Part shown: in pieces, positions 1 through 55,391 of the stretch
How the letters are laid out: each line of letters begins with the position of its first letter
Position numbering within the stretch: the stretch's first letter is position 1
Assembly: GCA_028826165.1 (NCBI GenBank)
Contig: JAPDFW010000116.1
Span: 113,392-177,391, forward strand
Direction: 5' to 3'
Length of the DNA: 64,000 bases
DNA from: Anaeramoeba ignava BMAN
Taxonomy: Eukaryota; Protista; Anaeramoebae
Program-made: the position numbers and the translations under genes
The notes under the pieces: model-generated
The model's database searches: none
What the model saw: only the letters and a program-made list of their open reading frames with translations
Told to the model about the DNA's origin: nothing

Positions 1-240
1 AATTTAATTTAATTTAATTTAATTTAATTACGAAATCTAAAAATTGTTTATTTAAAAAAAAAGAGAATAAAGAAATATTTTTTATTTTCGTTAGTTTTTC
101 ATTTTTTAAAAAAAGTTAAATTTGGAATTTAAATTTGTTTATGTTTTTATGTTTGTTTTTATTTTTATTTACGGAAATGTTTCTGAATTTGAATCTTTTG
201 AACCTTTTGAATCTTTTAAAATATTTGGATTATTTGACAT
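1..240 (-). CDS. 5' end of an unknown gene running off the left edge (first exon MSNNPNILKDSKGSKDSNSETFP...)
   Basis: ATG at 240 on the minus strand, open frame up to a GTAAAT donor near 172, ACTAAC-like branch site near 89-94, TTTTCATTTT motif upstream near 350. Confidence 0.45.
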
Positions 241-5634: not shown

Positions 5635-8600
5635 TTAAATTTTTTTGAAAAACTTATTAAAAAGCCATCTGAGTGAAATAAAAATGAAAAGAAGGAAGAT
5701 AATTGTAGTAATCAATTCTTTCCAAACGAATTTATCAGCATTTTTCATTTTCTTGATAATTGATCTTTCTTTTTTTGCAAAATGAAGAGGAAATGAATTT
5801 GGATTGATCAAATAAAGTTGAGAAACTTCTTGAAGTTGTTTAAGTTGTAAATAATTAAGAGTTTGGTCAACTTTATCAAAATATAAACCTTTGACAAATT
5901 GTTGAATAATTTTATAGCTTTTTTGAGTTATATCTTGAAAAGAATTGCTTTTAATTGATATTTGGTTATTATTATTGTTATTATTATTATTGTTATTTTC
6001 ATTTGAATTTTCATTTGAATTTTCATTTGAATTTTCTTCAATTTGATCAAAATAATCACTTCTTGCAAATAAAATCAATTTGTGAACTAAAACTTTGTTT
6101 TTTTCAACAATAATTTGAAAATCTTTAGTCGAATTATCTGAATATAATTTGGCGAAATCTTTTGAAAAATTGCTTAAATTTTGTTGATAATCACTTGAGG
6201 GTAAAGTGGTTCCAATTTCTTTTGTGATTTGAATAAGTGAACTAAGATAAAGAGGATCAAGAACTCCTGAATAAATGTATTTCATGAATTCTTTGACAAT
6301 TATTAAAGTATATTTTTTCAAAACAGAAAGTGTTTTTTCTAGTTTTTTTTCTCCAATTCTTGCTTTAAGAATCAATGAATGTGATCTTGTTGTTCCGTTT
6401 GAACAATCAATATCAATATCTGTATATGCTTGATCAGTAAATAATTCATAGAGGTCTTGGCCAAGTGGTGAATATTGTTTAATTTGCGTTCTTTTTGAAA
6501 CATTATGCAATGAATTTAATGCTTTCTTTGAATATTTTTAAATAAATTTTTTAAATAAATTTTTAAATAAATTTTTAAATAAATTTTTAAATAAATTTTT
6601 AAATAAATTTTTAAATAAATTTTTAAATAAATTTGTAAATAAATTTTTAAATAAATTTATAAATAAATTTGTAAATAAATTTTTAAATAAATTTGTAAAT
6701 AAATTTTTAAATAAATTTTTAAATAAATTTGTAAATAAATTTGTAAATAAATTTATAAATAAATTTTTAAATAAATTTTTAAATAAATTTTTAAATAAAT
6801 TTTTAAATAAATTTTTAATTTCAAACAGTTCTGATTTTTTCATCTTCTGTTGTTAAATATAAAATTCGTAAAGTATCTAATGAACAATTTTGAGTGCAAG
6901 CATATATTAATGCATGTTCATTTTGTTTCTAAAGTTTTTTATATATTTTTAAATTTAAATTTAAAATTAATTTAAAATTAAAATTAAAATTAATTCTAAA
7001 CATTAGATGATTCTAAAGGACATCCTGCAACAACTAAAGCATAAATAATTGCAGAATCAACTTGTTTTTGAATTCCAATATGTAAAGCTCGAAATCCCTT
7101 TCAAATTTCAAATTTTTAATTTTTAATTTTTAATCTTTAATTTTTAATTTTTTAATTTTTAATTTTTAATCTTTAATCTTTCATCTTTAATTTCAAATTT
7201 TTAATTTTTAATTTTTAATATTTTTAATTTTTAATTTTGAAAACAAAATACAAAAATAATTTCAAATATTTTTTTTAATATTTAATTTTAATTTCTTAAA
7301 AATTTTTAATTTTTAATATTTACAACCTAATTTTGAAAACAAAAATACAAAAATAAATAGCATTTCTTAAAAAAATTTCTTATCAAAAATAGCAAACATT
7401 CTAATTTTAAAAAAATAAACAAATTTTAAAATGAAAATTAATAATAAAAATAAAAATAATAATTATTAACATTTTTCGAATAAACATTTGCTCCTTGTTC
7501 AATTAAATAATTAACAATTTCTATTTTTCCTGAAATTACTGCATTATGTAATGGTGTATATCCCTAAATTTCAATTAAAAAAACAAGAAATGAAATTAAA
7601 AACAATTTTTTTTAAAAGAAAAATTTAAATCAATTTTACTTCCTGAAAAAAATATAAATAATTAAATTGAAAATTAAATTAAAATTAAAATTAAAAATTA
7701 CTTTCTAAAAATTAAAACAAAGTTAAAAATTAATTTTTTTTTGTAACAAAATAAATATATAAATATATATAAATATATATAAATTATTTTTCAAACATTT
7801 TTCAAATTTATTTTTGCTCCATTTTCAATAAGAAGTTTTATAACTTGTACATCTGCTCCATGTAAACATGCAAAATGTAAAGGTGAATTTAACTGAATAA
7901 ATAGAAATTTAAAATTAAAAAGAAACTAAAAAGAAACCTTTTTTTTTCGTTAAACAATTTTTACATTCTTTTTTCAAAATGAAAAAAATATAAGAAGATT
8001 TTTTGTTTAATTAAAAAATTTTTACATTCTAATAAAATTAAAATAAATTTAAAATAAATTGAATGAAAATCAAATTATATTTTGAAAAAATTTTACATCA
8101 ACAATTCTTGGATCAGCAGAACCTTCAATTAATACTTGAAAACTTTCTAATGAAACTAAACTAGTGCAAGCTTTATGAAGAGAAGTTTGATTCTTTAAAG
8201 AAAATAATTTTTTTATAAATTTTTCCAATTAAAATTAAAATAACAAATTTTACTGACTAAAGAATATCAAAAAGAAAAATATAAATTTCCATTTTGAAAA
8301 AAAAGAATGATTTAAATTACTGACTAAAAAATTAAAATTAAAATTAAAATTAAAATTAAAATTAAAATTAAAATTAAAATTAAAATTAAAATTAAAATTA
8401 AAAATTAAAATTAAAATTAAAATTAAAATTAAAATTAAAATTAAAATTAAAATTAAAATTAAAAATAAAATTAAAATTATTTTTGTTTTCAAACATCTGG
8501 TTCATTTGGATTTGAACCTAATGTAATCATCATAATTAATGCTTCTGGTGTTGGTTTATTTTTACATAAAATATGAAGAGGGATTTCTTGCTATTAATTA

Positions 8601-9551
8601 TTAATTAATTATTTTTTTTAAAAACAGAAAAAAAGTTTAAAAAATTTGAAAGAATAAAATCAAAAAATACATTCTAAATAAATTAATAAATAAAACAATT
8701 AATATAAGAAATAGAAAAAGAAAACGATTAATTAATAAAGATTACATACTAAAATTTATTTATAATTTTAATAATAAATTTATTTACAATTTTAATAATA
8801 AATTTATTTATAATTTTAATAATAAATTTATTTATAATTTTAATAATAAATTTATTTATAATTTTAATAATAAATTTATTTATAATTTTAATAATAAATT
8901 TATTTATAATTTTTAATAATAAATAAATTTATTTATAATTTTAATAATAAATTTATTTATAATTTTAATAATAAATTTATTTATAATTTTTAATAATAAA
9001 TTTATTTACAATTTTAATAATAAATTTATTTTATTTTAATAATAAATTTATTTACAATTTTAATAATAAATTTATTTTTTTAATAATAAATTTATTTACA
9101 ATTTTAATAATAAATTTATTTATAATTTTAATAATAAATTTATTTATAATTTTAATAATAAATTTATTTATAATTTTAATAATAAATTTATTTACAATTT
9201 TAATAATAAATTTATTTACAATTTTAATAATAAATTTATTTATAATTTTAATAATAAATTTATTTACATTTTTTAAAACAACATCAGAACCGGCAAAAAT
9301 AAGTGCACGTAAAATTTCAGGAAGAATATTTTGAACTGAACAAGCATAATGAAGTATGGTTTCATTCTTAATAAAAAATAAAGTAATTAAGAAAACACGT
9401 TTTTTTTTATTATTTAATTTTGATTTTAATTTTAATTTTAATTTTAATTTTGATTTTTTACTCCAGAATTTGATAAATCAAGTTTTTCTTTTAAAATTTG
9501 TTCAACTTTAAATAAATCATTTAAAGCAACTGCTTCTCTTAATCTTTGCAT
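5635..9551 (-). CDS. ankyrin-repeat + tandem BTB/POZ protein with a C-terminal TM helix, multi-exon
   Basis: Short exons with ankyrin motifs (ETILHYAC, EIPLHIL, TSLHKAC, SPLHFAC, YTPLHNA); last exon has two BTB domains (YTDIDI..HSLILKAR, KDFQI..VHKLILFARSDYF) and a hydrophobic tail. Confidence 0.8.
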
Positions 9552-22819: not shown

Positions 22820-23030
22820 TTTGATTTGAATAAATCCAATATTCAAATATTTGAAATGATTTATTACTTAATTCACTATAATCTCTAACTTTATTAGAAG
22901 TATCTTTTGTTACAGATAAAAACATTCCTCGATATAATTTACTTCTCATTATTAATATTAATTTTGGAAATTTATATTGTTTTTCTTTTCTTTCAATTAT
23001 AAAATCTTTTTCATTTTCATTTAAATAAGA
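22820..23030 (-). pseudogene. BTB-domain gene fragment truncated by the satellite array
   Basis: Minus frame reads YLNENEKDFIIERKEKQYKFPKLILIMRSKLYRGMFLSVTKDTSNKVRDYSELSNKSFQIFEYWIYSNQIK; no start codon, 5' side abuts the 143-bp array. Confidence 0.75.
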
Positions 23031-24730
23031 AGAATAGATTTAATTTAATATTTAATTTAATATTTAATTTATAAATATAATTTAATATTTAATTTTATTA
23101 TTAAAATATTAATTTATTGTTTTAGATTTAAATATTTTATTATTTAAATATTTAACATATAAATATAAAAAATAAGAATAGATTTGATTTAATATTTAAT
23201 TAATAAATTAATTTAAAAATATAATTTAATATTTAATTTTATTATTAAAATAATAATTTATTGTTTTAGATTTAAATATTTTATTATTTAAATATTTAAC
23301 ATATAAATATAAAAATAAGAATAGATTTAATTTAATATTTAATTTATAAATTAATTTAAAAATATAATTTAATATTTAATTTTATGTTTAAAATAATAAT
23401 TTAATGTTTTAGATTTAAATATTTTATTATTTAAATATTTAACATATAAATATAAAAATAAGAATAGATTTAATTTAATATTTAATTTTTAAATTAATTT
23501 AAAAATATAATTTAATATTTAATTTTATTATTAAAATAATAATTTATTGTTTTAGATTTAAATATTTTATTATTTAAATATTTAACATAAAAATATAAAA
23601 ATGAAAATAGATTTAATTTAATATTTAATTTATAAATTAATTTAAAAATATAATTTAATATTTAATTTTATGTTTTAAAATAATAATTTAATGTTTTTAG
23701 ATTTAAATATTTTATTATTTAAATATTTAACATATAAATATAAAAATAAGAATAGATTTAATTTAATATTTAATTTATAAATTAATTTAAAAATATAATT
23801 TAATATTTAATTCTATGTTTAAAATAATAATTTATTGTTTTAGATTTAAATATTTTATTATTTAAATATTTAACATATAAATATAAAAATAAGAATAGAT
23901 TTAATTTAATATTTAATTTATAAATTAATTTAAAAATATAATTTAATATTAATTTTTATTATTAAAATATTAATTTATTGTTTTTAGATTTAAATATTTT
24001 ATTATTTAAATATTTAACATATAAATATAAAAAATAAGAATAGATTTAATTTAATATTTAATTTATAAATTAATTTAAAAATATAATTTAATATTTAATT
24101 TTATTATTAAAATAATAATTTAATGTTTTAGATTTAAATATTTTATTATTTTAAATATTTAACATATAAATATAAAAATGAAAATAAGTTTAATTTAATA
24201 TCTAATTTATAAATTAATTTAAAAATATAATTTAATATTTAATTTTTGTGTTTAAAATAATAATTTATTGTTTTAAATTTAAATATTTTATTATTTAAAT
24301 ATTTAACATAAAAATATAAAAATAAGAATAGATTTAATTTAATATTTAATTTATAAATTAATTTAAAAATATAATTTAATATTTAATTTTATTATTAAAA
24401 TAATAATTTATTGTTTTAGATTTAAATATTTTATTATTTAAATATTTAACATATAAATATCAAAAATGAAAATAAGTTTAATTTAATATCTAATTTATAA
24501 ATTAATTTAAAAATATAATTTAATATTTAATTTTGTGTTTAAAATAATAATTTATTGTTTTAAATTTAAATATTTTATTATTTAAATATTTAACATAAAA
24601 ATATAAAAATGAGAATAGATTTAATTTAATATTTAATTTATAAATTAATTTAAAAATATAATTTAATATTTAATTTTATGTTTAAAATAATAATTTATTG
24701 TTTTAAATTTAAATATTTTATTATTTAAAA
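23031..24730. repeat. ~143-bp satellite array 1 (~12 copies), upstream of BTB-TLDc gene 1
   Basis: agaatagattt recurs near 23031, 23175, 23318, 23461 ... Confidence 0.92.
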
Positions 24731-25113: not shown

Positions 25114-27494
25114 ATGGATAATAAAAATAATAATAACCAAATTGAAAATGCAAATCAAAATCAAAATGAAAATGAAATGAAAAATTTAGAAAAAAAAGTA
25201 ACAAAAAATTTAATTAAAGATTATTTAAACCTTTTAAATAGAAATTCATTTAAAGATTTTTCAATTTTTGTTGAGAATAAATCAAATCCTTTTGAAATTA
25301 AAGTTCATAAATCAATTTTATCTTCAAGATCTCCTTTTTTTAATGATTTTTAAGGCAAGAATCTCTTTCTATTTCTTTAAATCAATTTAATAAAAAAGAA
25401 ATGGAATCAATTTTGAGTTATATTTATTATGGAAATATTTCTTTTGAGAATCAAGAAAATCTTATTCAATTATTAGAAATTTCAATTTATTTTAAATTAA
25501 ATTTATTGAAAGAAATTATTCAAAAAAAAATTTTAAATTCAATTAATTATTCAAATTTTTTCCAATTTTTATTCCAAAATCGAAATTTAAATTCAAATGA
25601 AATTGAAATAAAATGTTTTGAATTAATAAATCAAAATTTTTCCCAAATTCAGAATAATGAGAATTTATTCAATTTAACTAAAGAAGAAATTATCAAATTT
25701 ATTCAATTTAAACAAGAAAAAAAAGAAATTTTTCAATTTGATTTTTTTCAATTTTTAAATAATTGGATTGAAAAAAGAAATCAAAGATTAAAATTAAGGA
25801 AATATAAACACAAAATGAATGCAAAGAAAAGATTATTTCATTCTTTTTTTTCATTATTTGATAAAGATTCAATTTCAAAACAAGATTTTGATAAATTAAA
25901 ACAATTTGATATTTTTCTTCCAAATTCTTTTTTAATTCATTTTGAAAGAACTATTTTTGAAATTCAAGATCAAGAAAATCAAACAAAAATCAAAGAAAAA
26001 GAAAAGAAAATTCAAGAAAATGATAAACAAATCAAAGAAAATGAAAAGAAAATTAAAAGAAGAGATAAAAGAATTAAAGAAAATGATAAAAAAATTAAAT
26101 CATTCGAAACAGAAAATCAAAATATGAAATCGGAATTTGAAAAAGAAATTGAAAAGAAAGAAAAAGAAAACGAAAATAAAGAAAAAGAAAAAAAAGAGAT
26201 TCAAGAGAAACTCAAAAAAGAAATTGAAAAGAAAGATAAAATTCTCAAACAAAAAGATGAAGAAATTCAAAATCTTAAATTATCATTTGAGAAAGAAAAA
26301 ATAAAAGAAATTCATAATCAAAATCAAAATCAAAATCAAAACCAAAATCAAAATAAATTATTGAAGATTTTTTCAAATTCAGAAATTATTAAAGATATTG
26401 AATATGTTAAGAAATTACAAGAATGGATAAATGATAATGATTTTTTTTCTAAAATGAAAAAAGGATTTTCAGCAAAAAGAGATGGATTTGATTCTAAAAA
26501 ATGGCATAAAGCAGTTGATGGGAAAGGAAAAACATTAGTTATTATCAAAACAAAAGATAATTTTATTTTTGGAGGATTTACTCAAGTTGGATGGACAAAT
26601 GATAAATCAAAATGGAGAGAAGAAGATAGAAATAGGGATGATGGATATATTCCAGATTCAAATGCATTTATTTTTTCATTAAGAAATAATAAAGGAGATA
26701 GAATACCAGAAAAGTTTACAATTAAACAAGGAGAAGAAAAATATGCAATTGGTTATTATTTAGATTATGGTCCAACTTTTGGAAGTAAATATAAATAATT
26801 TTTATATTTAATAAATATTTATTATTATAATTAAAATTAAATTTAATAAATAATCCAAAATATTAATATAATAAATAATATTATTATTTCAATTTAAAAT
26901 AAAATCAATTTTAAATTAAATTATTATTAATTATTATTAAAATTAATTATTTATCTTTATTAAAATAGTTTGTAAATAAATTATATTTAATAAATATTTA
27001 TTATTATAATTAAAATTAAATTAATAAATAATCCAAAATATTAATATAATAAATAATATTATTATTTAAATTTAAAATAAAATTAATTTTAAATTAAATT
27101 ATTATTAATTATTATTAAAATTAATTATTTATTTTTATTAAAATAGATGGTAAATAATTTATATTTAATAAATATTTATAATTATAATTAAAATTAAATT
27201 TAATAAATAATCCAAAATATTAATATAATAAATAATATCATTATTTCAATTTAAAATAAAATTAATTTAAATTAAATTATTATTAATTATTATTAAAATT
27301 AATTATTTATATTTATTAAAATATTTATAGATGATATTTTCTTAAATTCTAAATTACAACCTGGTTGTTCAAATTTTGGTGAAAGTTATAATCTACCTAA
27401 TGTAATTAAATATGGAACAAATGAAGCTCAAAGTTATTTAGCTGGTTCTTATGATAAATGGGTTGTTGATGAACTTGAAACTTATTTCATTTAA
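25114..27494 (+). CDS. BTB - coiled-coil - TLDc protein, paralogue 1 (exon 25114-26784 with a 1-nt frameshift near 25350; candidate micro-exons 26969-26971 and 27147-27149; last exon 27331-27494)
   Basis: KDFSIFV..VHKSILSSRSPFF (BTB); FSAKRDGF, TLVIIKT..FIFGGFT, NAFIFSL, YGPTFG..D and YLAG..W.V.ELETYF (TLDc). Confidence 0.88.
26785..27330 (+). repeat. tandem array of 3 complete GT..AG introns (~180 nt) separated by 3-nt spacers TTT and ATG
   Basis: aaatag|ttt|gtaaat at 26963-26977 and aaatag|atg|gtaaat at 27141-27155. Confidence 0.9.
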
Positions 27495-28451
27495 AAACTT
27501 TTTTTCATTTTTTTTTCAAAATTCAATTCAATTTTAATTTACTTTCAATAAATTTAAATTCTTTAAATCAATAAATAGGAAACAAATCTAATTTTAAACA
27601 ATTTAATTTTAATTTAAAAATATTATTAAAAAGAAGATTAAATTGAAAAAAAGAAAAATCAAAAAAATAAAAAAATTGAAAACAGAAATTAATAATAATT
27701 AAATGAAATTATTTTGTAAAATATAAAAAAGGAAGAAAATCAATTATAATTTATTATTAATTATTATTAAAATTAATTATTTATCTTTAATAAAATAGTT
27801 GAATTTTAATTTCAATTTAATTTAAATATTGGGAATTGATTTAATTTAATATTTAATTTAAAAATTAATTTAAAAATATAATTTAATATTTAATTTTATG
27901 TTTAAAATAATAATTTAATGTTTTAGATTAAAATATTTTATTATTTAAATATTTAACATATAAATATAAAAATGAAAATAGATTTAATTTAATATTCAAT
28001 TTATAAATTAATTTAAAATATAATTTAATATTTAATTTTATTATTAAAATAATAATTTATTGTTTTAGATTTAAATATTTTATTATTTAAATATTTAACA
28101 TAAAAATATAAAAAATGAAAATAGATTTAATTTAATATTTAATTTATAAATTAATTTAAAAATATAATTTAATATTTAATTTCATTATTAAAATAATAAT
28201 TTATTGTTTTAGATTAAAATATTTTATTATTTAAATATTTAACATATAAATATAAAAAATAAGAATAGATTCAATTTAATATCTAATTTATAAATTAATT
28301 TAAAAATATAATTTAATATTTAATTTTATTATTAAAATAATAATTTAATGTTTTATATTTAAATATTTTATTATTTAAATATTTAACATATAAATATAAA
28401 AAATGAGAATAGATTTAATTTAATATTTAATTTATAAATTAATTTAAAAAT

Positions 28452-31400
28452 GGTTCCGTTTCCGGTTGTCTTGCCGGTCAAAAACAACAAAAAAAAAATA
28501 ATAGAAAAGAAAAATTTTTAAATTTCGATTTCAGTCCAAGAAAAAAAAAGGAAAATAGAAAAATTCAAGTTAGAAATTATTTTTTTTTTCGACTTTTTTT
28601 TGGCGGCTTGTTTTTTTCTTTTTGTTTTTTTTCTTTTTGTTTTTTTTCTTTTTGTTTTTTTTCTTTTTGTTTTTTTTCTTTTTGTTTTTTTTCTTTTTGT
28701 TTTTTTTCTTTTTGTTTTTTTTCTTTTTCTTTATTTTCTAAATTCATTTTTGTTTTTTCTTTATTTTCTAAATTCATTTTTGTTTTTTCTTTTCTTTTTT
28801 TGGAAATAAAGAAAGATGGAATTAATTTTCCGTCAGGATTTTCATCTAACAATAATTTTAAATCTTTGAATTTCATCAATTTTCTTTTTGAATTCTTTGC
28901 AAAAAGATAACATCTTAAAAGCAAATATCTTAATTGAATGATTGTTGTCTGATCTAAAAAATGAACAAGATCATAAACACTGATTTCAAATTCAGATAGA
29001 ACCCAGAGAAAAGCAAGAGTAAAGATTCCACACTGGCTGCCATCTTTTTGTATTGGAATTCGGATAATATCTTGAATTTCAAAAGATGTTTGAAGAAAAA
29101 AATCAAAGCAAAAGGAAAGCTGACTAGCATCAAGAAAAAATTGATTCCGTTGATAATTACCAAGAGAATTTAGAATACTTAAAGAATGTAATTGGAGATC
29201 GATATGATACAAAATAAAATGAGATTTTCTATAATATATGACATTGATATAGCGCGTTTTTTCTCTCTGAATTGTGTTGAAGAAATCATTAACTTCATTC
29301 AATTGGTCCCAAAGCTTGAAATTATGCCAAACTGGAGAAATAATAAGTAGTAAATTATTTTTGTTTTCTGACAAAGGATTAGAATCATTCTCGGGAATAG
29401 ATTGGATAAAACGATAATATTTTTCAATCTCTCCCATTTGTTCATGATTTTTTTCAAATTCTTGAAAAGAAGAAAGAAAATTTTCAGTTTTCTCAATTTT
29501 TTCAAAATTACTCCATAAATTCGTCCATTGAGTGAAAAGTTGGTCGGTAAATTGGTCGATAGAGCCCGAGGGAATATGCCAGCGATTTAATATTTCAATA
29601 ATCGGAAAAAGAGTATAGAAAACAAATTGGGTTTCGATAATTTGAGAACTTGGAGCCAAAAATTTAAATCCATTATAAATATCAGAATAATCCAACCAAC
29701 CGCGAATGTCCAAATTTTTTTGCCAGTCATCACTTGGAGTTATGTGAAATCGAAAAAGTTTTAGGCTGTGTTCTAAAATCTGTTCAATTGCAGTTTCAAC
29801 AACTTCTTTTTGAATTGAAGAAAATTTTCCTTCTGGTGTCTGCTCTTTCGTGATTTCAGGCAATCCCGATATTTCTTGAGAGTTGCACATTTCGATTATA
29901 TTTTGATTATCTTGTTGAGAATTTTCTATCAGATTGATAGATTTGGAATCGTCAAAATCTTTGCCTTGAAAAATATTTTTTTGGCTATTTTTGACAACAA
30001 TGGAAGGATTCAATACGTTTTGAGAAACTCGTTTTGTTGGTTGAGAAGATATCTTTCTTCTTTGGGGGAAATTCTTTTGAAGTTCCTTCATTTTTTTTTT
30101 CCATTCTCTCGTTTTTTGGTTATACAAGCGCATTTTCTCAAATTTTTTTTGTGCTTTTGGATCTCGATTCTGGTTTCTTAGGCTATTCTTTTGGATTTTG
30201 AGGTTATACAAACTTGCAACAATCCATAAACAAGCCTGATGTAAAATCAAATCGCATTGGACTTTAACTGAAGTAACACGGAATCTCTTGAGAACTGAAA
30301 ACACATTTTCTATTATTGATCTATATTGATTGATGATAGCATTTCTTTCTTTTTCTTGATCTGTAAAAACTCTTTTTTTACTATTTTTCAAAGGAACAAC
30401 TGCATACTCATGACTAAACGCTTTATCCCCGAGTACTCGATATTCTTTTAGTTGTTTACTCAGTCCTGATTCCTCCACCGCTCTGGAATCGCTCGTGGCT
30501 CCTGGAAATCCAGTTTCAAAGAATATTATTTTACCTAGATGATCGCACACAACAATACTCTTTATTGATGAGTAACCTCTTTTGATTGACCAAAATATGC
30601 TTTCCATTGCTTTTACTCGGGGCCGAGGGTGATCTGTTCCATCAATCACTCCGATAACATTTGGTAATTGCTTTTTTCTCCAATAAAGTTCATTTTTTAT
30701 AAGTTCTTGATTATTTGGCCAATTGATACAATCTTCTAATACTTCCTTAATAGCGGGAAGGATTTTTTTAAAGTATTTTGAAATTGTTCCTTTTGTTATT
30801 TTACAAAGTGCAGCAAGAAATTCAAATGGAAGAGCATATCTAAGGAAAATGAGTGCAAGCAAAATTCGATTGTTAAGATTCACTTTCTTTCCTTGTTTTC
30901 CCGGAGAATCCAGAAGATGATATTTTTGGATTTTTTCTGGTGGTAGTTTTCTGATCCGATCAAAAATTAAATCTAAATGAACTTTCTCTAATCCTGTGAA
31001 AATTGTTATCAATTTCTCATTTGGGTATATATACTCGAACAAATCAAATATTTGGCAACTTGTTTTTTGGTTTTCATTTGATTCCTTTTTTTCTTCTGGT
31101 TGAGGTTCTACATTATCTTTCATTTCAGATTCAGATTTCTGTGAGAATTCTTGATTGAGATTATGGTTTTCATTATTTGGAAAGAAAATTTTTAATTTCT
31201 CTAATTTATTTAAGATCCTTGTTAAAATTTTATCAGGAGATTCTTTTTCCTTTCCATATCTCTGCAATTTGTTAAGAGTTACTAAACGGATGCGGATGGT
31301 TTTGGATTTTTTTGACATTAAAAAAAAACAAAAAAGAAAAAAAATGAAAAAAAAAAAAAAAACAAAAAAGGATGTCACATTTGATATCAAAAAAAAAGAG

Positions 31401-31947: not shown

Positions 31948-34900
31948 ATGGATAATAATAATAATAATAATAACCAAATTCAAAATGCAAATCAAAATGA
32001 AAATGAAAATGAAATGAAAAATTTAGAAAAAAAAGTAACAAAAAATTTAATTAAAGATTATTCAAACCTTTTAAATAGAAATTCATTTAAAGATTTTTCA
32101 ATTTTTGTTGAGAATAAATCAAATCCTTTTGAAATTAAAGTTCATAAATCAATTTTATCTTCAAGATCTCCTTTTTTTAATGAGTTTTTAAAAGGGCAAA
32201 ATGAGATTGATAAAATTTTTTTAAATCAATTTAATAAAAAAGAAATGGAATCAATTTTGAGTTATATTTATCATGGAAATATTTCTTTTGAGAATCAAGA
32301 AAATCTTATCCAATTAATGGAAATTTCAATTTATTTTAAATTAAATTTATTGAAAGAAATTATTCAAAAAAAAATTTTAAATTCAATTAATTATTCAAAT
32401 TTTTTCCAATTTTTATTCCAAAATCGAAATTTAAATTCAAATGAAATTGAAATAAAATGTTTTGAATTAATAAATCAAAATTTTTCCCAAATTCAAAATA
32501 ATGAAAATTTATTCAATTTAACTAAAGAAGAAATTATCAAATTTATTCAATTTAAACAAGAAAAAAAAGAAATTTTTCAATTTGATTTTTTTCAATTTTT
32601 AAATAATTGGATTAAAAAAAGAAATCAAAGATTAAAATTAAAGAAATCTAAGCACAAAATGAATGAAAAGAAAAGATTATTTCATTCTTTTTTTTCATTA
32701 TTTGATAAAGATTCAATTTCAAAACAAGATTTTGATAAATTAAAACAATTTGATATTTTTCTTCCAAATTCTTTTTTAATTCATTTTGAAAGAACTATTT
32801 TTGAAATTCAAGATCAAGAAAATCAAACAAAAATCAAAGAAAAAGAAAAGAAAATTCAAGAAAATGAAAAGAAAATTAAAGAAAAAGAAAAGAAAATTAA
32901 AAGAAGAGATAAAAGAATTAAAGAAAAAGATAAAAAAATTAAATCATTTGAATCTGAAACTCAAAATCTGAAATCTGAATTTGAAAAAGAAATTGAAAAG
33001 AAAGATAAAATTCTCAAACAAAAAGATGAAGAAATTCAAAATCTTAAATTATCATTTGAGAAAGAAAAAATAAAAGAAATTCATAATCAAAATCAAAATG
33101 CAAATAAATTATTGAAGATTTTTCCTCAATTTTCAAATTCAGAAATTATTAAAGATATTGAATATGTTAAGAAATTACAAGAATGGATAAATGATAATGA
33201 TTTTTTTTATAAAATGAAAAAAGGATTTTCAGCAAAAAGAGATGGATTTAATTCCCAAAATTGGCATAAAGCAGTTGATAATAAAGGAAAAACATTAGTT
33301 ATTATCAAAACAAAAGATAATTTTATTTTTGGAGGTTTTACTCAAGTTGGATGGACAAATGATAAATCAAAATGGATAGAAGAAGATAGAAATGAGGATT
33401 ATGGATATATTATTGATCCAAATGCATTTATTTTTTCATTAAGAAATAATAAAGGAGATAGAATACCAGAAAAGTTTACAATTCAAAAAGGTGAAGAAAA
33501 ATATGCAATTTTTTATCATTTAAATTATGGTCCAGTTTTTGGAAGTAAATATAAATAATTTATATTTAATAAATATTTATTATTATAATTAAAATTAAAT
33601 TAATAAATAATCTAAAATATTAATATAATAAATAATATTATTATTTCAATTTAAAATAAAATCAATTTTAAATTAAATTATTATTAATTATTATTAAAAT
33701 TAATTATTTATTTTTATTAAAATAGTTGGTAAATAAATTATATTTAATAAATATTTATTATTATAATTAAAATTAAAATTAATAAATAATCCAAAATATT
33801 AATATAATAAATAATAATATTATTTCAATTTAAAATAAAATTAATTTTAAATTAAATTATTATTAATTATTATTAAAATTAATTATTTATCTTTATTAAA
33901 ATAGCTGGTAAATAATTTATATTTAATAAATATTTATTATTATAATTATAATTAAATTAATAAATAATCCAAAAATATTAATATAATAAATAATAATATT
34001 ATTTAAATTTAAAATAAAATTAATTTAAATTAAATTATTATTAATTATTATTAAAATTAATTATTTATCTTTATTAAAATAGGTTGTAAATAATTTATAT
34101 TTAATAAATATTTATTATTATAATTAAAATTAAATTAATAAATAATCCAAAAATATTAATATAATAAATAATAATATTATTTAAATTTAAAATAAAAATA
34201 ATTTTAAATTAAATTATTATTAATTATTATTAAAATTATTTATTTATCTTTATTAAAATAGTTAGTAAATAATTTATATTTAATAAATATTTATTATTAT
34301 AATTAAAATTAAATTAATAAATAATTCAAAATATTAATATAATAAATATTATTATTATTTCAATTTAAAATAAAAATTAAATTTTAAATTAAATTATTAT
34401 TAATTATTATTAAAATTAATTATTTATCTTTATTAAAATAGATGGTAAATAATTTATATTTAATAAATATTTATAATTATAATTAAAATTAAATTAATAA
34501 ATAATCCAAAAATATTAATATAATAAATATTATTATTATTATTTCAATTTAAAATAAAATTAATTTTAAATTAAATCATTATTAATTATTATTAAAATTA
34601 ATTATTTATCTTTATTAAAATAGATGGTAAATAATTTATATTTAATAAATATTTATTATTATAATTAAAATTAAATTAATAAATAATCCAAAATATTAAT
34701 ATAATAAATAATATCATTATTTCAATTTAAAATAAAATTAATTTAAATTAAAATATTATTAATTATTATTAAAATTAATTATTTATATTTATTAAAATAT
34801 TTATAGCTGATGTTTTCTTAAATTCTAAATTACAACCTGGTCGTTCAAATTTTGGTCATAGTTATAATCTACCTAATGGAATTAAAAAATACACAAATGA

Positions 34901-34970
34901 AGCTAAAAGTTATTTAGCTGGTTCTTATGATAAATGGGTTGTTGATGAACTTGAGACTTATTTTATTTAA
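31948..34970 (+). CDS. BTB - coiled-coil - TLDc protein, paralogue 2 (exon 31948-33544; six candidate 3-nt micro-exons; last exon 34807-34970)
   Basis: Near-identical to paralogue 1, intact ORF, same BTB and TLDc motifs. Confidence 0.92.
33545..34806 (+). repeat. tandem array of 7 complete GT..AG introns (~180 nt) separated by 3-nt spacers TTG, CTG, GTT, TTA, ATG, ATG
   Basis: AG|NNN|GT junctions at 33726-28, 33905-07, 34083-85, 34262-64, 34442-44 and 34624-26. Confidence 0.92.
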
Positions 34971-35309
34971 AAACTTTTTTTTCATTTTTTTTTCAAAATT
35001 CAATTCAATTTTCATTTACTTTCAATCAAATTAAATTCTTTAAATCAATAAATAAGAAACAAATTTAATTTTAAACAATTTAATTTTAATTTAAAAATAT
35101 TATTAAAAAGAAGATTAAATTGAAAAAAAGAAAAATCAAAAAAATAAAAAAATTGAAAACAGAAATTAATAATAATTAAATGAAACTATTTTGTAAAATA
35201 TAAAAAAGGAAGAAAATGAATTATAATTTATTATTAATTATTATTAAAATTAATTATTTATCTTTAATAAAATAGTTGAATTTTAATTTCAATTTAATTT
35301 AAATATTGG

Positions 35310-38125
35310 GAATTGATTTAATTTAATATTTATTTTATAAATTAATTTAAAAATATAATTTAATATTTAATTTTATTATTAAAATAATAATTTTAATGTT
35401 TTAGATTTAAATATTTTATTATTTAAATATTTAACATAAAAATATAAAAAAATTAGAATAGCTTTGATTTAATATTTAATTTATAAATTAATTTAAAAAT
35501 ATAATTTAATATTTAATTTTATTATTAAAATAATAATTTATTGTTTTTAGATTTAAATATTTTATTATTTAAATATTTAACATATAAATATAAAAATGAG
35601 AATAGATTTAATTTAATATTCAATTTATAAATTAATTTAAAAATATAATTTAATATTTATTTTTATTATTAAAATAATAATTTTAATGTTTTAGATTTAA
35701 ATATTTTATTATTTAAATATTTAACATATAAATATAAAAATGAAACTAGATTTAATTTAATACTTAATTTATAAATTAATTTAAAAATATAATTTAATAC
35801 TTATTTTTATGTTTAAAATAATAATTTAATGTTTTAGATTTAAATATTTTATTATTTAAATATTTAACATAAAAATATAAAAATGAAAATAGATTTAATT
35901 TAATATTCAATTTATAAATTAATTTAAAAATATAATTTAATACTTAATTTTATGTTTAAAAATAATAATTTAATGTTTTAGATTTAAATATTTTATTATT
36001 TAAATATTTAGCATATAAATATAAAAATAAGAATATATTTAATTTAATATTTAATTTATAAATTAATTTAAAAATATAATTTAATATTTAATTTTATGTT
36101 TTAAAATAATAATTTAATGTTTTAGATTTAAATATTTTATTATTTAAATATTTAGCATAAAAATATAAAAATGAGAATAGATTTAATTTAATATTCAATT
36201 TATAATTTAATTTAAAAATATAATTTAATATTTAATTTTATGTTTAAAATAATAATTTAATGTTTTAGATTTAAATATTTTATTATTTAAATATTTAGCA
36301 TAAAAATATAAAAATAAGAATAGATTTAATTTAATATTTGATTAATAAATTAATTTAAAAATATAATTTAGTATTTAATTTTATTATTAAAATAATAATT
36401 TATTGTTTTAGATTTAAATATTTTATTATTTAAATATTTAACATATAAATATAAAAATAAGAATAGATTTAATTTAATATTTAATTTATAAATTAATTTA
36501 AAAATATAATTTAATACTTAATTTTATTATTAAAATAATAATTTATTGTTTTAGATTTAAATATTTTATTATTTAAATATTTAACATAAAAATATAAAAA
36601 AATAAGAATATATTTGATTTAATATTTAATTTATAAATTAATTTAAAAAATATAATTTAATATTTAATTTTATTATTAAAATAATAATTTAATGTTTTAG
36701 ATTTAAATATTTTATTATTTAAATATTTAGCATATAAATATAAAAATGAAAATAGATTTAATTTAATATTTAATTTATAAATTAATTTAAAAAATATAAT
36801 TTAATACTTAATTTTATTATTAAAATAATAATTTATTGTTTTAGATTTTAAATATTTTATTATTTAAATATTTAGCATAAAAATATAAAAATGAAAATAG
36901 ATTTAATTTAATATTTAATTTATAAATTAATTTAAAAATATAATTTAATATTTAATTTTTATTATTAAAATAATAATTTATTGTTTTAGATTTAAATATT
37001 TTATTATTTAAATATTTAGCATATAAATATAAAAATGAGAATAGATTTAATTTAATACTCAATTTATAAATTAATTTAAAAATATAATTTAATATTTAAT
37101 TTTATTATTAAAATAATAATTTATTGTTTTAGATTTAAATATTTTATTATTTAAATATTTAGCATATAAATATAAAAATGAAAATAGATTTAATTTAATA
37201 TTTAATTTATAAATTAATTTAAAAATATAATTTAATATTTAATTTTATTATTAAAATAATAATTTAATGTTTTAGATTTAAATATTTTATTATTTAAATA
37301 TTAAACATATAAATATAAAAACAAAAATAGATTTAATTTAATATTTAATTTATAAATTAATTTAAAAATATAATTTTAATATTTAATTTTTATGTTTAAA
37401 ATAATAATTTTAATGTTTTAGATTTAAATATTTTATTATTTAAATATTAAACATATAAATATAAAAACAAAAATAGATTTAATTTAATATTTAATTTATA
37501 AATTAATTTAAAAATATAATTTTAATATTTAATTTTTATGTTTAAAATAATAATTTTAATGTTTTAGATTTAAATATTTTATTATTTAAATATTTAACAT
37601 AAAAATATAAAAATAAGAATAGATTTAATTTAATATTTAATTTATAAATTAATTTAAAAATATAATTTAATATTTAATTTTATTATTAAAATAATAATTT
37701 ATTGTTTTAGATTTAAATATTTTATTATTTAAATATTAAAACATATAAATATAAAAATAAGAATAGATTTAATTTAATATTTAATTTATAAATTAATTTA
37801 AAAATATAATTTAGTATTTAATTTTATTATTAAAATAATAATTTATTGTTTTAGATTTAAATATTTTATTATTTAAATATTTTACATAAAAATATAAAAA
37901 ATGAAAATAGATTTAATTTAATATTTAATTTATAAATTAATTTAAAAATATAATTTAATATTTAATTTTATTATTAAAATAATAATTTAATGTTTTAGAT
38001 TTAAATATTTTATTATTTAAATATTTTAACATATAAATATAAAAAATAAGAATAGATTTAATTTAATATTTAATTTATAAATTAATTTAAAAATATAATT
38101 TAGTATTTAATTTTATGTTTAAAAT
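35310..38125. repeat. ~143-bp satellite array 3 (~19-20 copies)
   Basis: Same unit as arrays 1 and 2. Confidence 0.92.
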
Positions 38126-38185
38126 ATAATTTTAATATTTTAAAAATGAAAATCATTTTTTCATTTTTTTCTTTGATATTTTTAA

Positions 38186-39805: not shown

Positions 39806-42800
39806 TTAATTTTTTTTCAAATAAGCAGGCATAAAAACAGAAATTAAAGAATCTGAAGTTGCAGCCAAATATAATTGATAAGGATGAAAATTAATTGCAT
39901 AAAAAAGTCCAAATTTTTGAACAATAAAAGCGTCATAATAACCAATTTTACCCATTAATTCACCATTTGTATTAAGGATACTAACATTATCATTTTTTAC
40001 AGCACTAAATATAAATATTAATTTAAATTTAATTTAATTTAAATTTAATTTAAAATTTAAAAATTGATTTAAATTTGATTTGAATTTGATTTAAAAATTA
40101 CCTCGCAATTAAAGGAGCATAATCACTCATTTCTAATGCAGTTAAACTATTATGAAGATTCAAAGTTTTTACAGGTTGTGGATATCTAAAATCCCAAAAC
40201 TTAATAACACCAGCAGAAGAACCAGTAATTAAAGTATTTTCATCTCCTTTCTGTTTGCAAATATTAATAATACGAGATTTATGTTCTGAAAAAGCAAATT
40301 TCAAAGAAGTGGAACGTTTATCTCTTAAATCATAAACTAAAAATCTTCCGTTATAAGATCCGCCAAAAAGAATATTTTTATCTTGAGGATCATGCTTCAA
40401 AGAAGTCAATCTTTGCTCACAATTACTAGGCAAAGTTTGATATTCAATTTCAGTATTAACATCCCAAATCTTAATAGCTCTATTCTCTCCAAAAACGGAA
40501 ACAAATCCGTTGTCTGGATTCCAGTCAAAAACACAACGTGAATCTTTCGAAGTTGATTTTTCCTCTAAATATGGGAAAGAACGCCAAGCTGAAACCATTT
40601 TGGGCTGTTCATCTCGATTGTTCATTAAAAATGTGTCCCATATCTTCACTATCCCATCAGTGGAGCCTGTCATAATTAAGCCACTATCATACTCGTTGAC
40701 AAGTGACAGAAAAGACAATCGAGATTTTCCCGAATTTCCGTTTTCGAATTTTTTAATGGATTTCCCTGGATTGACTGTCCAATCCCAAATTCTTATGGTG
40801 TTTCTTCCATCGATCGAGAAAAGAAACGGTTCAAAAGGATGAAATATAATTGATGTGACTTTTTTGGTTTGGTTGTCCATCACAGAGCAGCTTTCGGTGA
40901 TTTGCTGTTTCTTTTTTTGTGAAGAATATACTTTCATATCGTTAATCATTGCTTGTTTAGTTTTCATAATTGAATTAATATCTCGCATTTTTCTTTTTTT
41001 CTTTTTCTTTTTGTTGTTATTTTTATTTTGATTTTGATTTTGATTTTGATTTTGGTTTTGGTTTTGATGTTTTTCTTGATAACTTCGAATAAGATTTGAA
41101 TTATTTGATGTATATTCTTGGGGAACATTAAATGTATCAACACACATATCAAATAAATTCGAACGTAAAGGTTCGAGTTTTGATGAGTGTGTTTTCTGCA
41201 CTTTATCATTTTCGTTTTCGTGATATATTATTGACTGAGTTGATTCAGCTTTTTTGGGTGTTAAGAATTTTTTTTTGATTGGATTTTTTGGAGAAACAAT
41301 ATTGGGTTTTGTTTTTGGTTCTTTTTCGTGTTCCAAATCAATATTTTCAATTGTTTTATTTTTCTCATTGATTTCTTGAAAAGAATCTTTTGATTTTTTT
41401 GCGTTTGGTGAGAAAATTTCTGTCAAACTTCTTGGAGTTGTTTTGCGGAATGTTGTTGATGTTTTTAGTTTCCTGTTGCTTTTATTAATTGGTTGTAAAG
41501 TGTTTGAATTATTTGATAAGTCTTGGTTCTTCAGTTCTTTTTTGAGATAATTAATTGTTCCATCGTCTTTTGATTTGAATAAATGTGAATGATTTGGAAA
41601 CCAATATATTTTAAGTTTTTGAATAAATTGCTTTGCCAGCTGCTCAATTTCTTCATCAGGATCAAGTGTGAATGAAACAAGTGATTTCCATATCATTGAG
41701 AATATTGTTGAGTTATGATCGTATTGGATTTCCTGTTTATTATTTTCGAGTTTGCCGAGTTCGTAATCTATATCCATTGCAATATCCTTAATTTTATCTA
41801 TTATTATTTTTTTTTAAATGTATTTTTTTCAATATTTTTTCCAAATATATTATTTTTAAATATATTTTTTTTTTCAAACCTGAATAAAAACACACTAATT
41901 TTGTTAGCATCACTAATAACTCTTTTCTTACTAAAGGACTCCCATCATTTGCAATAGCTAATAATGAAATACTCATTCTTAATTCTTCAGAAGTCCTTGT
42001 TTCTTGTGTTCTATTTTCATAAATTATATTAGAAAGTCCATAAACAGCACAAGCTCTAACAATGGGAATTGGATCTTTCAAAAATCTGAAAAATTTATCA
42101 GAAATTCCATCAACAAGCGCCGAGTATTTTGCTTCATCATAACCTTCCATTAGTTTTGATAAACATAAACATGCCCATTGATGAACTATTGGGGATTGCT
42201 CATCTAATTTTGGCAAGCAAATATTTAATAAATGCGAACGATGACATTTTATTTTTCCTTCTAAATAATTGTCTTGAAGTAATGAAATGACAAGAGCAGT
42301 TGATGCAAAATTTTCAGGTGATAATTGAGGATTTGATAATGTGCTAATAAAATGAATATAACCTTTTTCTCTAACAAGATCTTCTTGGCATTTCTTTTTT
42401 TTTTTTGGATTATAAATTTCAATATAAAAATTATAAATATTTTTTTTTTTAAAAAAAAATTTTTTTCATTCTCATCAAAAAATACTTGGTCATAAGTTAA
42501 TATTTTCCCCCAAATTGTAATTAAAATCATTTTCAATTCAAAATCTTGAGTTGGAAGAAGCATTAAAACATAAGGAAAAATTCCAACAGTCAAAGCTTTT
42601 TTAACCGCCCATTTTCCAAGATCCAAAAACTTTACCAATAGCAATAAAGCATGTTTTCTATAATTCTGGCTCAATAATAACTGCAAAATAATCGGGAGTT
42701 GACCGACCCCAAATTGCAATTCTGTTCCCGAAGTGAGCCAACTTTCAAAAGCAATCAATTGATCCTGGAAAAATGAATTGAATTTATATGGACGGTTTTC

Positions 42801-51177: not shown

Positions 51178-52194
51178 ATGGATAGTTTAAATCATTCACA
51201 AAATAATAATTCAAATGATGAAAAAGAAGATCAAAATAATTTAATAACGGAAAAACCAAAAGAAAAAACAAACAAAGAAAACACGATAGAAAAAAGCAAC
51301 AACAACAAAGAGAAAAAAGAAAAACAAGCACGAGAGCCATTCCGAAAGATTCTTTATTTGAAACAGGATTATCCCGATAATTATATTGACGATTCTTTTT
51401 TGGAAAAATTAATATTAAATGCAAATGTTCATCCATTGAAATTTTGGGAAGTCTCAAAATCGTCATTAGCAATAACACAACAAGTGACGATCGTAATAAT
51501 ATTCTGTCTGGTATTCTTCCATGCTCTCACAAACACCATTACAATCACGCACTTTTTCATACTGGATATTTTTCTAGTGTTGATCGGATACTTTATATTT
51601 TTATTGATTCTCCCGATCAAAACAATTTCAATCAATAAATTCTTGCATCATTTAAAGGTTTTATTGGTGCTTCTTGTTTTGCTTTATTGCGTATCTCCTG
51701 TACTGCGCACTTTGACACAGACATTCTCGCCTGATACCATATGGGCTTTGACAATAATCCTGTTCGTTATCCATTTACTTTCGCAAGATTACGATTATAT
51801 CAACGGACTTTCTGACAAATTGAATGCTCCTTTATCTTTGAATGCCGCAATATTTGCATCTGTAATACTTGCCTCAAGGCTTGATTCTGATATGCTTGTG
51901 TTTGCTTTTGTTTCTTTTGCGATTGAAATATTTGGATTTTTTCCTGTCATCCGACATATGGCTTATAAATTGTCTTTTAAAATTCATTTTTTGCTCACGT
52001 TTTTAATGTGTTTTGGCACTTTTGTTTCCATTTATGTCTTCAATAGATTCTTTTCGTTCTTGTTTGTTGGTGTTTTGTTGATGATGTCTGTGTTTATTCC
52101 TGGTATTTTTACATATTTGCATAGATATAAGATTACTGTTAATGGTCCTTGGGATGAAGCAAAACCAGCCCCTCTTTATTCATTAATGAATTGA
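51178..52194 (+). CDS. PIGC: GPI-GlcNAc transferase subunit PIG-C/GPI2, intronless
   Basis: RKILYLKQDYPDNYID.SFL, SPVLRTLT..FS.DTIWA, SLNAAIFASV.LASRL, GPWDEA. Confidence 0.95.
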   Translation: MDSLNHSQNNNSNDEKEDQNNLITEKPKEKTNKENTIEKSNNNKEKKEKQAREPFRKILYLKQDYPDNYIDDSFLEKLILNANVHPLKFWEVSKSSLAITQQVTIVIIFCLVFFHALTNTITITHFFILDIFLVLIGYFIFLLILPIKTISINKFLHHLKVLLVLLVLLYCVSPVLRTLTQTFSPDTIWALTIILFVIHLLSQDYDYINGLSDKLNAPLSLNAAIFASVILASRLDSDMLVFAFVSFAIEIFGFFPVIRHMAYKLSFKIHFLLTFLMCFGTFVSIYVFNRFFSFLFVGVLLMMSVFIPGIFTYLHRYKITVNGPWDEAKPAPLYSLMN

Positions 52195-52363: not shown

Positions 52364-55300
52364 ATGCTTTCTCCTCAAAAATTTTATTTTTCATCTGCAA
52401 AGAATTATCAACATATTTTACTTAATCAAATTGCAAAAAGAAAATATGGTGATTTAAAAGAAAAAGATAAAGTTTTTACAAATCTTCATGGAAAACTTGG
52501 TTGGGATTTTAAGGTAAAAAAATTTGTCAAACAAAAAATCAAAATAAAAACCAATTAAATAAAGTTTTTGTAATAAAAAATTTCTGTTAATTTATTTGTT
52601 AATTTATTTCTTTAATTAAGTCTGCAATAAAAAGGGGGGATTGGTCAAACACAAAAAATATTATTGAAAAAGGGAAAAAACATATTATTGATGAAATAAA
52701 AGCGAGTGGATTAAGAGGTAGAGGAGGTGCTGGTTTTCCAACAGGAGTTAAATGGTCTTTTATGCCTCAAAATAGTGAAAAGTAATTAAATATTAAATAT
52801 TAAATTAAATATTAAATATTAAATTAAATATTAAATATTAAATTGAATAAAATATTAAATATTAAATTGAATTAAATATTAAATATTAAATATTAAATAT
52901 TGAATTAAATACTAAATTGAATTAAATATTAAATATTAAACATTAAATTGAATATTAAATATTAAATTGAATTAAATATTAAATTGAATTGAATATTAAA
53001 TATTGAATATTAAATATTGAATTAAATATTAAATATTAAATATTAAATTGAATTAAATATTAAATATTAAATATTAAATTGAATTAAATATTAAATATTA
53101 AATATTAAATTGAATTAAATATTAAATATTAAATTGAATTAAATATTAAATTGAATTAAATATTAAATTGGATTAAATATTGAATATTAAATTGAATTAA
53201 ATATTAAATATTAAATATTAAATATTAAATATTAAATATTAAATATTAATTTGAATTAAATATTAAATTGGATTGAATAATAAATTAAACATTAAATTGA
53301 ATTAAATATTAAATATTAAATTGAATTAAATATTAAATTGAATTAAATATTAAATATTAAATATTAAATTGAATTAAATATTAAATATTAAATATTAAAT
53401 TGAATTAAATATTGAATTGAATTGAATTGAATAATAAATTAAATATTAAATATTAAATATTAAATATTAAATTGAATTAAATATTAAATATTAAATATTA
53501 AATTGAATATTAAATATTAAATATTAAATTGAATTAAATATTAAATTGAATTAAATATTAAATATTAAATATTAAAATATTAAATATTAAATTGGATTAA
53601 ATATTAAATATTAAATATTAAATTGAATAAAATATTAAATATTAAATTGAATTAAATATTAAATATTAAATTGAATTAAATATTAAATATTAAATTGAAT
53701 TAAATATTAAATATTAAATTGAATTAAATATTAAATATTAAATTAATTAAATATTAAATATTAAATTGAATTAAATATTAAATATTAAATTGAATTAAAT
53801 ATTAAATATTAAATTGAATTAAATATTAAAAATTAAATATTAAATTAAATATTAAATATTAAATATTAAATTGAATTAAATATTAAATTAAATATTAAAT
53901 TGAATTAAATATTAAAATTAAAATTAAAATTGAAAATTAAATATTAAAATTAAATAATTAAATATTAAATTGAATTAAATATTAAATATTAAATTGAATT
54001 AAATATTAAATTGAATTAAATATTAAATTGAATTAAATTGAATTAAATATTAAATATTAAATTGAATTAAATATTAAATATTAAATTGGATTAAATATTA
54101 AATTAAATATTAAATATTAAATATTAAATATTAAATATTAAATATTAAATATTAAATATTAAATTGAATTAAATATTAAATATTAAATATTAAATTAAAT
54201 TGAATATTAAATTAAATATTAAATATTAAATTGAATTAAATATTAAATATTAATTTGAATTGAATTAAATATTAAATTGAATTGAATTAAATATTAATTT
54301 GAATTGAATTAAATATTAAAAATTGAATTGAATTGAATTTTCTTATAAAAAATATAAGACCATCTTACTTAATTATTAATGCAGACGAAGGAGAACCAGG
54401 AACTTGCAAAGATAGAGAAATCATGCGAAATGATCCACAAAAACTACTTGAAGGATGTTTACTAGCTGGATATGCAATGAACTGCAAAGCAGCATACATT
54501 TACATTCGAGGAGAATTTCAAGAAGTAAGAAAACGTGTTGAAGAAGCAATCAAACAAGCATATGAAAAAGGAAAACTTGGAAAGAACGCCTGCAACACGG
54601 GATACGATTTCGACGTTCGCATTCACAGCGGAGCAGGAGCATATGTTTGCGGGGAAGAAACAGCACTAATTGAATCACTTGAAGGAAAACCAGGAAAACC
54701 AAGACTCAAACCGCCCTATCCTCCACAACATGGTTTATGGGGAAATCCAACAAACGTCAACAACGTTGAAACAATTTCTTCTTGTCCTGAAATTCTTCGT
54801 CGAGGATCTTCTTGGTACAATTCACTCGGAAGAAAAAACAATCACGGCACAAAAATTTTTTCAATTTCGGGACATGTCAACCGACAATGTGTTATTGAAG
54901 AAGAAATGAGTATCCCACTCAAAAAGCTCATTGAAAAGCATGCTGGCGGTGTGAGAGGCGGCTGGGAAAATCTACTCGCTATAATTCCCGGCGGTTCTTC
55001 AACGTCCCTAATTCCACGTCAGCAATGCGAAGAAGTTTTGATGGATTATGATTCGCTTTCTCAAGTAAAAAGCTCATTTGGTACAGGCGCTATTATTGTC
55101 ATGGATAAGTCAACTGATGTCGTAAAGGCTATTGCAAGACTCTCAAAGTTTTATCACCATGAATCTTGTGGTCAGTGTGTTCCATGCAGAGAAGGTACTG
55201 CTTATCTAGATAAAATTATGCATAGAATTCTTGATGGTGTTGCTAAATTAGAGGAAATTGATATGCTTCTTGAAATCACTCAATCTATGAAAGGTACAAC

Positions 55301-55391
55301 TATTTGTGCTTTGGCTGAAGCTGCTGCTTTGCCTATTGAAGGTTTGTTGAGACATTTTAGAGATGAAGTTGAGAAGAAAATTAGAAAGTAG
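52364..55391 (+). CDS. nuoF: NADH dehydrogenase 51-kDa flavoprotein (NuoF/NDUFV1) with an N-terminal presequence; introns 52514-52620 and 52782-54358
   Basis: [68 protein letters not shown]. Confidence 0.96.
52785..54340. repeat. intronic ATTAAAT / ATTGAATTAAAT minisatellite (~1.5 kb)
   Basis: Direct reading of NuoF intron 2. Confidence 0.9.

Follow-up and report, generated by a model that had tools for sequence, protein, structure and literature searches.

Arrays of cloned intron units and 3-nt putative exons at one loop of a BTB-TLDc gene family in Anaeramoeba ignava: a candidate codon-level diversifier

Tandem alternative exons encoding whole or half domains, one of which is chosen from each cluster, diversify the recognition surface of Dscam1. 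In schistosome MEGs, which are found in Schistosomatidae only and encode secreted proteins, 10-20 exons of 3-81 nt (mostly 15 nt) per gene are separated by introns of 0.1-5 kb (bioRxiv 10.1101/2023.06.21.545858). Tetrahymena LRR genes contain arrays of 90-bp exons, that is, clonal exon-intron units in a single phase in which two neighbouring exons share the junction residue, and which recombine ectopically between paralogues (PMC6564038). Brown algal ROCO genes have tandem exons of one LRR each, for which shuffling, diversifying selection and alternative splicing have been proposed in candidate immune receptors (PMC3341825, PMC11378527). Finally, the single 3-nt microexons of animals, such as those of NCAM and Drosophila troponin T, are spliced and can be skipped, with one residue gained or lost (PMC8042270).

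The array described here, which lies in a BTB-TLDc gene of Anaeramoeba ignava BMAN, resembles schistosome MEGs in its serial, very short, frame-preserving putative exons and their fast evolution (skipping in MEGs gives rise to protein variants). However, these exons would be uniformly 3 nt long and codon-splitting, one cloned intron unit is common to ~45 genes and, while most of a MEG protein comes from micro-exons, only one loop in a folded intracellular domain of a 586-aa metamonad protein would be concerned here. Clonal exon-intron units in one phase, two-exon junction residues and ectopic recombination between paralogues of a recognition-type protist family are shared with Tetrahymena LRR genes, but the unit there is a 30-residue structural repeat and here it is one codon, each loop residue being a junction residue and no protein repeat being made. 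In ROCO genes, too, the module is an LRR repeat rather than a codon, and animal 3-nt microexons are isolated and conserved, unlike the present arrays of 2-30 hypervariable copies. Tandem alternatives are common to Dscam1 and these genes, although single choice is disfavoured here. The fold is that of the TLDc proteins NCOA7, OXR1, TBC1D24 and mEAK7 (PMC8608904, PMC8804929); these bind V-ATPase and are conserved and present in few copies, whereas in A. ignava the paralogues are fused to BTB, run into the hundreds and vary at surface positions. The array works in the manner of exon-shuffling and exon-skipping diversifiers but lacks a defining feature of each of the MEG, Tetrahymena LRR and ROCO systems, its module being a single split codon that belongs to an array of cloned introns and lies inside a folded domain. 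A published description of single-codon-exon arrays was not found in the literature searched, which included few subscription journals; searches of this literature for Anaeramoeba together with TLDc, and for single-codon exons of ankyrin genes, returned nothing relevant, and the text and supplements of the A. ignava genome paper (PMC11550330) leave the array unmentioned.

The window, that is, the whole 64,000-nucleotide stretch of A. ignava DNA that was analysed, contains a gene whose exon 1 matches the annotated protein KAJ5068380.1 (P0001, 586 aa). Pfam identifies BTB (PF00651, aa 40-145, E 2.5e-14) and TLDc (PF07534, E 6.9e-14) in this exon, which on its own scores 52.6 bits for PF07534, against a curated cut-off of 24.5. 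A BTB domain at the N-terminus with an interaction domain, here TLDc, at the C-terminus is the layout of BTB cullin-3 adaptors; many paralogues additionally have BACK (PF07707). The predicted structure of the gene, and a neighbouring paralogue for which no annotated protein was returned, are as follows.

31948-33544 (+): exon 1 of the BTB-TLDc gene, with BTB at aa 40-145, a coiled region and TLDc from aa 396; ends GPVFG plus 1 base, hence phase 1 (Pfam, KAJ5068380.1)
33545-33725 (+): intron unit 1, first-unit type, 5' end 6 nt longer
33726-33728 (+): micro-exon 1, 3 nt, TTG, with AG before and GT after
33729-33904 (+): intron unit 2
33905-33907 (+): micro-exon 2, 3 nt, CTG
33908-34082 (+): intron unit 3
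34083-34085 (+): micro-exon 3, 3 nt, GTT
34086-34261 (+): intron unit 4
34262-34264 (+): micro-exon 4, 3 nt, TTA
34265-34441 (+): intron unit 5
34442-34444 (+): micro-exon 5, 3 nt, ATG
34445-34623 (+): intron unit 6
34624-34626 (+): micro-exon 6, 3 nt, ATG
34627-34806 (+): intron unit 7, last-unit type, 3' end 6 nt longer
34807-34970 (+): last coding exon, 2 bases finishing the junction codon, 53 codons (DVFL...YFI) and the stop
26785-27330 (+): three-unit array of the neighbouring TLDc paralogue, spacers TTT (26969-26971) and ATG (27147-27149)

The first-pass annotation of this DNA had read the region as near-identical introns separated by variable 3-nt exons, and the description holds: the seven units are 175-181 nt long and 90-98% identical, all run from GTAAAT to TAG, and the six spacers follow one another as TTG, CTG, GTT, TTA, ATG and ATG. 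The phase 1 that it assigned is confirmed, the junction reading GPVFG-T-DVFL when every spacer is skipped and GPVFG-IAGFNDA-DVFL when all are included. Its 64 subsets also stand as combinations, none of them with a stop, but they specify only 48 distinct peptides. Within the array (33545-34806), AG and GT occur at the junctions only. By the criteria for U2-type introns, the units have GT...AG ends, restore the frame on removal and are devoid of the U12 5' motif. The last coding exon itself opens with CTG, which has the form of the commonest spacers.

How widespread this architecture might be was assessed over the 147-contig, 42,843,398-base A. ignava BMAN assembly. The scan for the junction pattern that had been suggested as a check returned 412 occurrences with a 3-nt gap and 12 in a reversed control, which argues that the pattern is not due to chance; other gaps gave 13 (4 nt) and 8 (2 nt, only two of these inside arrays). 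Genome-wide, the intron unit is matched at least 805 times. End patterns yielded 33 and 25 donor sites, which overlap, and 38 terminal acceptors, pointing to ~40-50 array genes; 27 arrays were parsed, 22 of them complete, and ~20 others were checked by their end patterns only. The site is identical in all 27 (phase 1 after GPxFG or GPxFGG, ending before D-hydrophobic). Parsed arrays contain 2 to ~30 spacers, 278 of 288 being 3 nt long, although the 2-, 4- and 5-nt spacers, like the lengths of the arrays, may be due to assembly errors; every 4-nt spacer, and the odd-length junctions generally, can be turned into a common triplet by a change of one homopolymer base, the kind of error expected of a nanopore assembly. 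The array as a whole is no assembly artefact, since errors cannot yield position-specific, stop-avoiding triplets. Five arrays on contig 1 are decayed, with introns of 53-281 nt and 60-77% identity that fall into all three length classes modulo 3, and yet each of their 89 spacers is 3 nt long and lies between AG and GT. Two other candidates were discarded: introner-like elements, which would require many unrelated sites rather than one codon of one gene family in 27 of 27 arrays, and recursive splicing at zero-length ratchet points, none of the 288 spacers being 0 nt long (AG and GT become adjacent in arrays only through the triplets GTT, GTG, GTA and GTC).

The family itself is expanded, as the first reading had supposed, since of 598 candidates genome-wide at least 150 scored as close matches to TLDc. 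Array genes are scattered on a poorly resolved tree of 172 TLDc domains, in which the array status of most rows is not known and a single clade is not supported. There are also an intronless paralogue (L036) and one with a single intron (L039), which combines first-unit and last-unit ends. A metagenome scan for relatives yielded one distant TLDc gene (L041), whose loop is uninterrupted; so far, the array is known from the A. ignava genome only. Several loci have peculiarities of their own: (i) in L029 (G000:C35:350756-354028, minus strand) a run of AAT/AAC spacers would create stops if included in order, and this array is possibly decaying, (ii) in L027 (G000:C24:121376-123063) the array is broken by TLDc-coding-like fragments and is either rearranged or misassembled and (iii) L022-L024 (G000:C1:1057847-1073256, minus strand) are four tandem paralogues with short diverged units, whose spacer order is partly orthologous, which suits them for the dating of spacer changes.

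What sets the spacers apart from the units is the way they vary. In a set of 149 long units, body sequences diverge by 3.0% inside an array and by 3.4% from one array to another, while spacer bases 1, 2 and 3 differ pairwise by 65%, 20% and 67%. A phase-1 reading makes base 1 the second position of a codon, base 2 its wobble position and base 3 the first position of the codon that follows, so that variation is concentrated on the bases that change amino acids. Base 2 is T in 88% of the spacers and never C; all 16 NTN triplets are seen and no NCN triplet, although C occurs at bases 1 and 3 (15, 0 and 10 of 123 for bases 1, 2 and 3, each array-triplet pair being counted once). No codon with T as its third base is a stop. 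Only 27 of 1706 ordered spacer pairs give a stop in the frame of the gene, against a mean of 139 (minimum 55) when letters are permuted within triplets, and 394 of 1453 pairs do so if the spacers are read in phase 2. P values for such statistics would be too optimistic, owing to the relatedness of the copies by descent, and the T at base 2 may owe something to ancestry (xTG) or to an acceptor preference as well as to stop avoidance. Eleven spacers are stop-prone (nine in the 3-nt set), all of them in genes that have T as the final base of exon 1, and outside L029 no stop arises from adjacent spacers. The GC content of the spacers is 26%, that of whole arrays 4%. The residues that spacers would encode are chiefly Tyr (20%) and Asp (19%), then Asn, Val, Phe, Ile and Ser, a mix that resembles antibody binding loops. 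Frame, stop avoidance and non-synonymous variation thus agree with the initial proposal that the spacers are frame-neutral exons. On this sequence evidence the array is real, family-wide and under selection; its spacers very probably serve as coding exons on which diversifying selection acts, and that they are functional exons we hold with high confidence.

Where the encoded residues would lie can be predicted from the TLDc domain. An alignment-based AlphaFold2 model has the TLDc fold with a pLDDT of 97.3 (32 for a single-sequence fold), the top 16 PDB hits of a structure search are all TLDc, and only TLDc structures have an E below 0.001 (Foldseek E 2e-8 to 5e-4 for NCOA7, OXR1, TBC1D24 and mEAK7-type proteins). 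The short loop first proposed on motifs is borne out by this model, which puts the junction residue in a beta-hairpin turn just before strand 144-146; matched by motif, the site probably corresponds to the glycine-rich bend joining two strands in NCOA7 (PMC8608904). Among 144 paralogues for which no array was parsed, the loop is gene-specific and has 1-12 residues (mode 3), and array genes read with all spacers skipped have only 1-2. Residues flanking the loop on both sides likewise vary among array genes, and a variable binding face around the loop is a reasonable inference.

A second gene in the window contains candidate exons of the same size. The ankyrin gene at 7002-9366 (minus strand), next to which lies a BTB exon (5635-6510), is composed of phase-0 exons of 93-96 nt with pairs of 3-nt exons between them, and its introns are unrelated, that is, not clonal. 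These pairs are as follows.

8748-8746 and 8673-8671 (-): ankyrin 3-nt exon pair
8323-8321 and 8256-8254 (-): ankyrin 3-nt exon pair
8028-8026 and 7967-7965 (-): ankyrin 3-nt exon pair
7704-7702 and 7642-7640 (-): ankyrin 3-nt exon pair
7400-7398 and 7326-7324 (-): ankyrin 3-nt exon pair

On the 33-position Pfam ankyrin model, a 31-codon exon spans positions 2-32 and a 32-codon exon positions 3-32, and the pairs would encode the two hairpin residues. Canonical spacing needs both of these residues at all four junctions checked (NGAKINLKN-K-E-GYTPLH, for example), which makes it very likely that A. ignava routinely includes consecutive 3-nt exons. A second family, beside a BTB exon, thus appears to have single-codon exons at its binding loops.

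The origin of the arrays has left traces in the units. The first reading had invoked gain or loss of units by recombination, which the genomic comparison supports, together with an exchange of units. First units differ by 3.0% between array genes and last units by 1.6%, against 12-13% for the flanking exons; this low divergence and the scatter of array genes on the tree both suggest that ectopic conversion has homogenised or spread the units. The last exon of each of the 22 complete genes starts with GTG, CTG or ATG, and ATG is the commonest spacer, which suggests that an intron was duplicated together with the three bases that open the exon behind it. Two tandem paralogues, whose orthologous units are 84-100% identical, display both ATG to GGG and GGG to ATG replacements with unchanged junction flanks, two-base swaps that look more like conversion than point mutation. 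The unit with the nearest-neighbour body has the same triplet no more often than expected by chance (8.7% of cases against 12.4%), a comparison that sequencing error may blur.

Taken together as a mechanism, the units would be spliceosomal introns and every spacer XYZ a phase-1 exon of 3 nt, in which X and Y complete the codon opened by the preceding exon and Z opens the next, with the consequence that each loop residue is spelled jointly by two neighbouring exons. With Y nearly always T, the codons would be of the form NNT. Such codons specify 15 amino acids, with Tyr, Asp, Asn, Phe, Val and Ser well represented, and never a stop, whatever their order. The array may have arisen by tandem duplication of an intron plus the first three bases (xTG) of the last exon. 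Its turnover may be due to unequal crossing-over and to gene conversion, with a single in-frame codon gained, lost or exchanged each time. Introns would be removed successively, so that runs of spacers are retained, and occasional skipping between near-identical splice sites would produce several loop variants per gene. As far as domain knowledge goes, BTB would recruit cullin-3 while the variable TLDc face picks substrates, and the family might be a repertoire of ubiquitin-ligase adaptors with variable specificity, perhaps directed against bacterial or viral proteins. We therefore lean, with a little more than even confidence, towards the array being a codon-level diversifier of one BTB-TLDc loop, in which spacer runs are included with variable skipping.

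A bolder version, which we put forward tentatively, is a splicing repertoire akin to antibody CDR3, in which ~45 BTB-TLDc genes choose subsets of single-codon exons written in a stop-free NNT alphabet and, together with ankyrin-BTB genes that have single-codon exons at their hairpin tips, form an intracellular variable-receptor system that feeds the ubiquitin pathway. Were this so, variants would number from tens to tens of thousands per gene (48 for the gene at 31948-34970), and the largest array would allow more than 50,000 with up to six inclusions.

The main alternative is that inclusion is constitutive: all spacers would be spliced in, so that a gene has a single loop, 3-31 residues long (IAGFNDA in the present gene), and only the DNA would generate diversity, as units are gained, lost and converted under selection, the array being a frame-safe coding minisatellite. 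We regard this as possible but on the doubtful side, although it fits the DNA data nearly as well as variable subsets do. A. ignava introns are short (mode 76 nt, median 102 nt; PMC11550330 Table S3A), which suggests intron definition, and the ankyrin 3-nt pairs look obligatory. Moreover, no stop is created by neighbouring spacers except in L029, the spacer that immediately precedes a stop-prone AA- or AG- triplet ends in A or G in all four of the other arrays with such a triplet (too few for significance), and an NTN alphabet would protect equally well against reshuffling of the DNA. However, up to 30 near-identical donors and acceptors in series would make error-free inclusion unlikely, and loops of 20-31 residues exceed the 1-12 of other paralogues.

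Far less probable is that the whole array is an intronic satellite removed as one intron, its spacers being tolerated leftovers that are 3 nt long only because rare use must keep the frame. NCBI models do omit all spacers in nearly every array gene, the skip-all protein is predicted to fold with high confidence, AT satellites abound in the genome and the single-unit paralogue L039 exists. Against this, neutral spacers should diverge like the body of the units (3%) and not by 65%, the variable bases are those that change amino acids while the wobble base is spared, spacer GC stands well above that of whole arrays, and AG and GT persist in decayed arrays. As to the gene models, 3-nt exons can normally not be placed by aligners or gene finders. 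Public models of array genes probably lack the loop, and comparable arrays in other genomes would be invisible to standard aligners. Homologue searches among transcript-derived proteins (EukProt) found some paralogues and none for an array gene, which, like the NCBI models, weighs against the coding reading that we favour.

The inclusion of exactly one spacer per transcript, as in Dscam, is improbable to a slightly greater degree. It would produce a loop of 2-3 residues, which is the modal length in paralogues, and the NCBI models of P0010 and P0049 join exon 1 to a single spacer, yet they then read through into the next intron. Placed alone after exon 1, all 11 stop-prone spacers give a stop; runs of identical spacers (seven consecutive ATG in L036) would be pointless, and merely 3-11 variants per gene would result. 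Least likely of all is somatic rearrangement, in which recombination between units from cell to cell (a contingency locus), and not splicing, would be the main source of variants: direct repeats are ~97% identical, every crossover between units keeps the frame, the number of spacers per array varies from 0 to 30 and the first-unit and last-unit ends of L039 are what a full collapse should leave, but the assembly shows one ordered array per gene.

If the favoured reading of variable skipping is correct, these genes would offer a new protist route to a binding repertoire without DNA rearrangement. If inclusion is constitutive instead, the array would still represent a new frame-safe mechanism by which a loop can evolve fast, and would lend itself to the study of how the spliceosome includes up to 30 consecutive 3-nt exons. 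The array would be the limit case of exon-based diversification, its module being a single split codon, with an alphabet evolved to be free of stops in any order that resembles an engineered NNT library.

Several features surround the TLDc genes in the window. An orphan copy of the 3' third of an intron unit (35218-35277, 81% identity), which ends in the acceptor motif, lies downstream of the stop codon and adjoins a satellite of 143-144 bp. This satellite flanks the TLDc genes (23022-24729, 27834-28451 and 35310-38142) and is devoid of AG-spacer-GT junctions. Between the two TLDc genes, 28577-31390 (minus strand) encodes a 937-aa ORF with DDE_Tnp_4 and HTH_Tnp_4, a PIF/Harbinger-like transposase, whose C-terminal 540 aa have no convincing Pfam match. 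Ordinary genes are also present, namely a NuoF-like (Complex1_51K) exon (54333-55391), PIG-C (GPI2; 51178-52194) and a WD40 protein (40098-41777), and at the very start of the window (32-36, minus strand) there is a candidate 5-nt spacer, ATTTC, between AG and GT.
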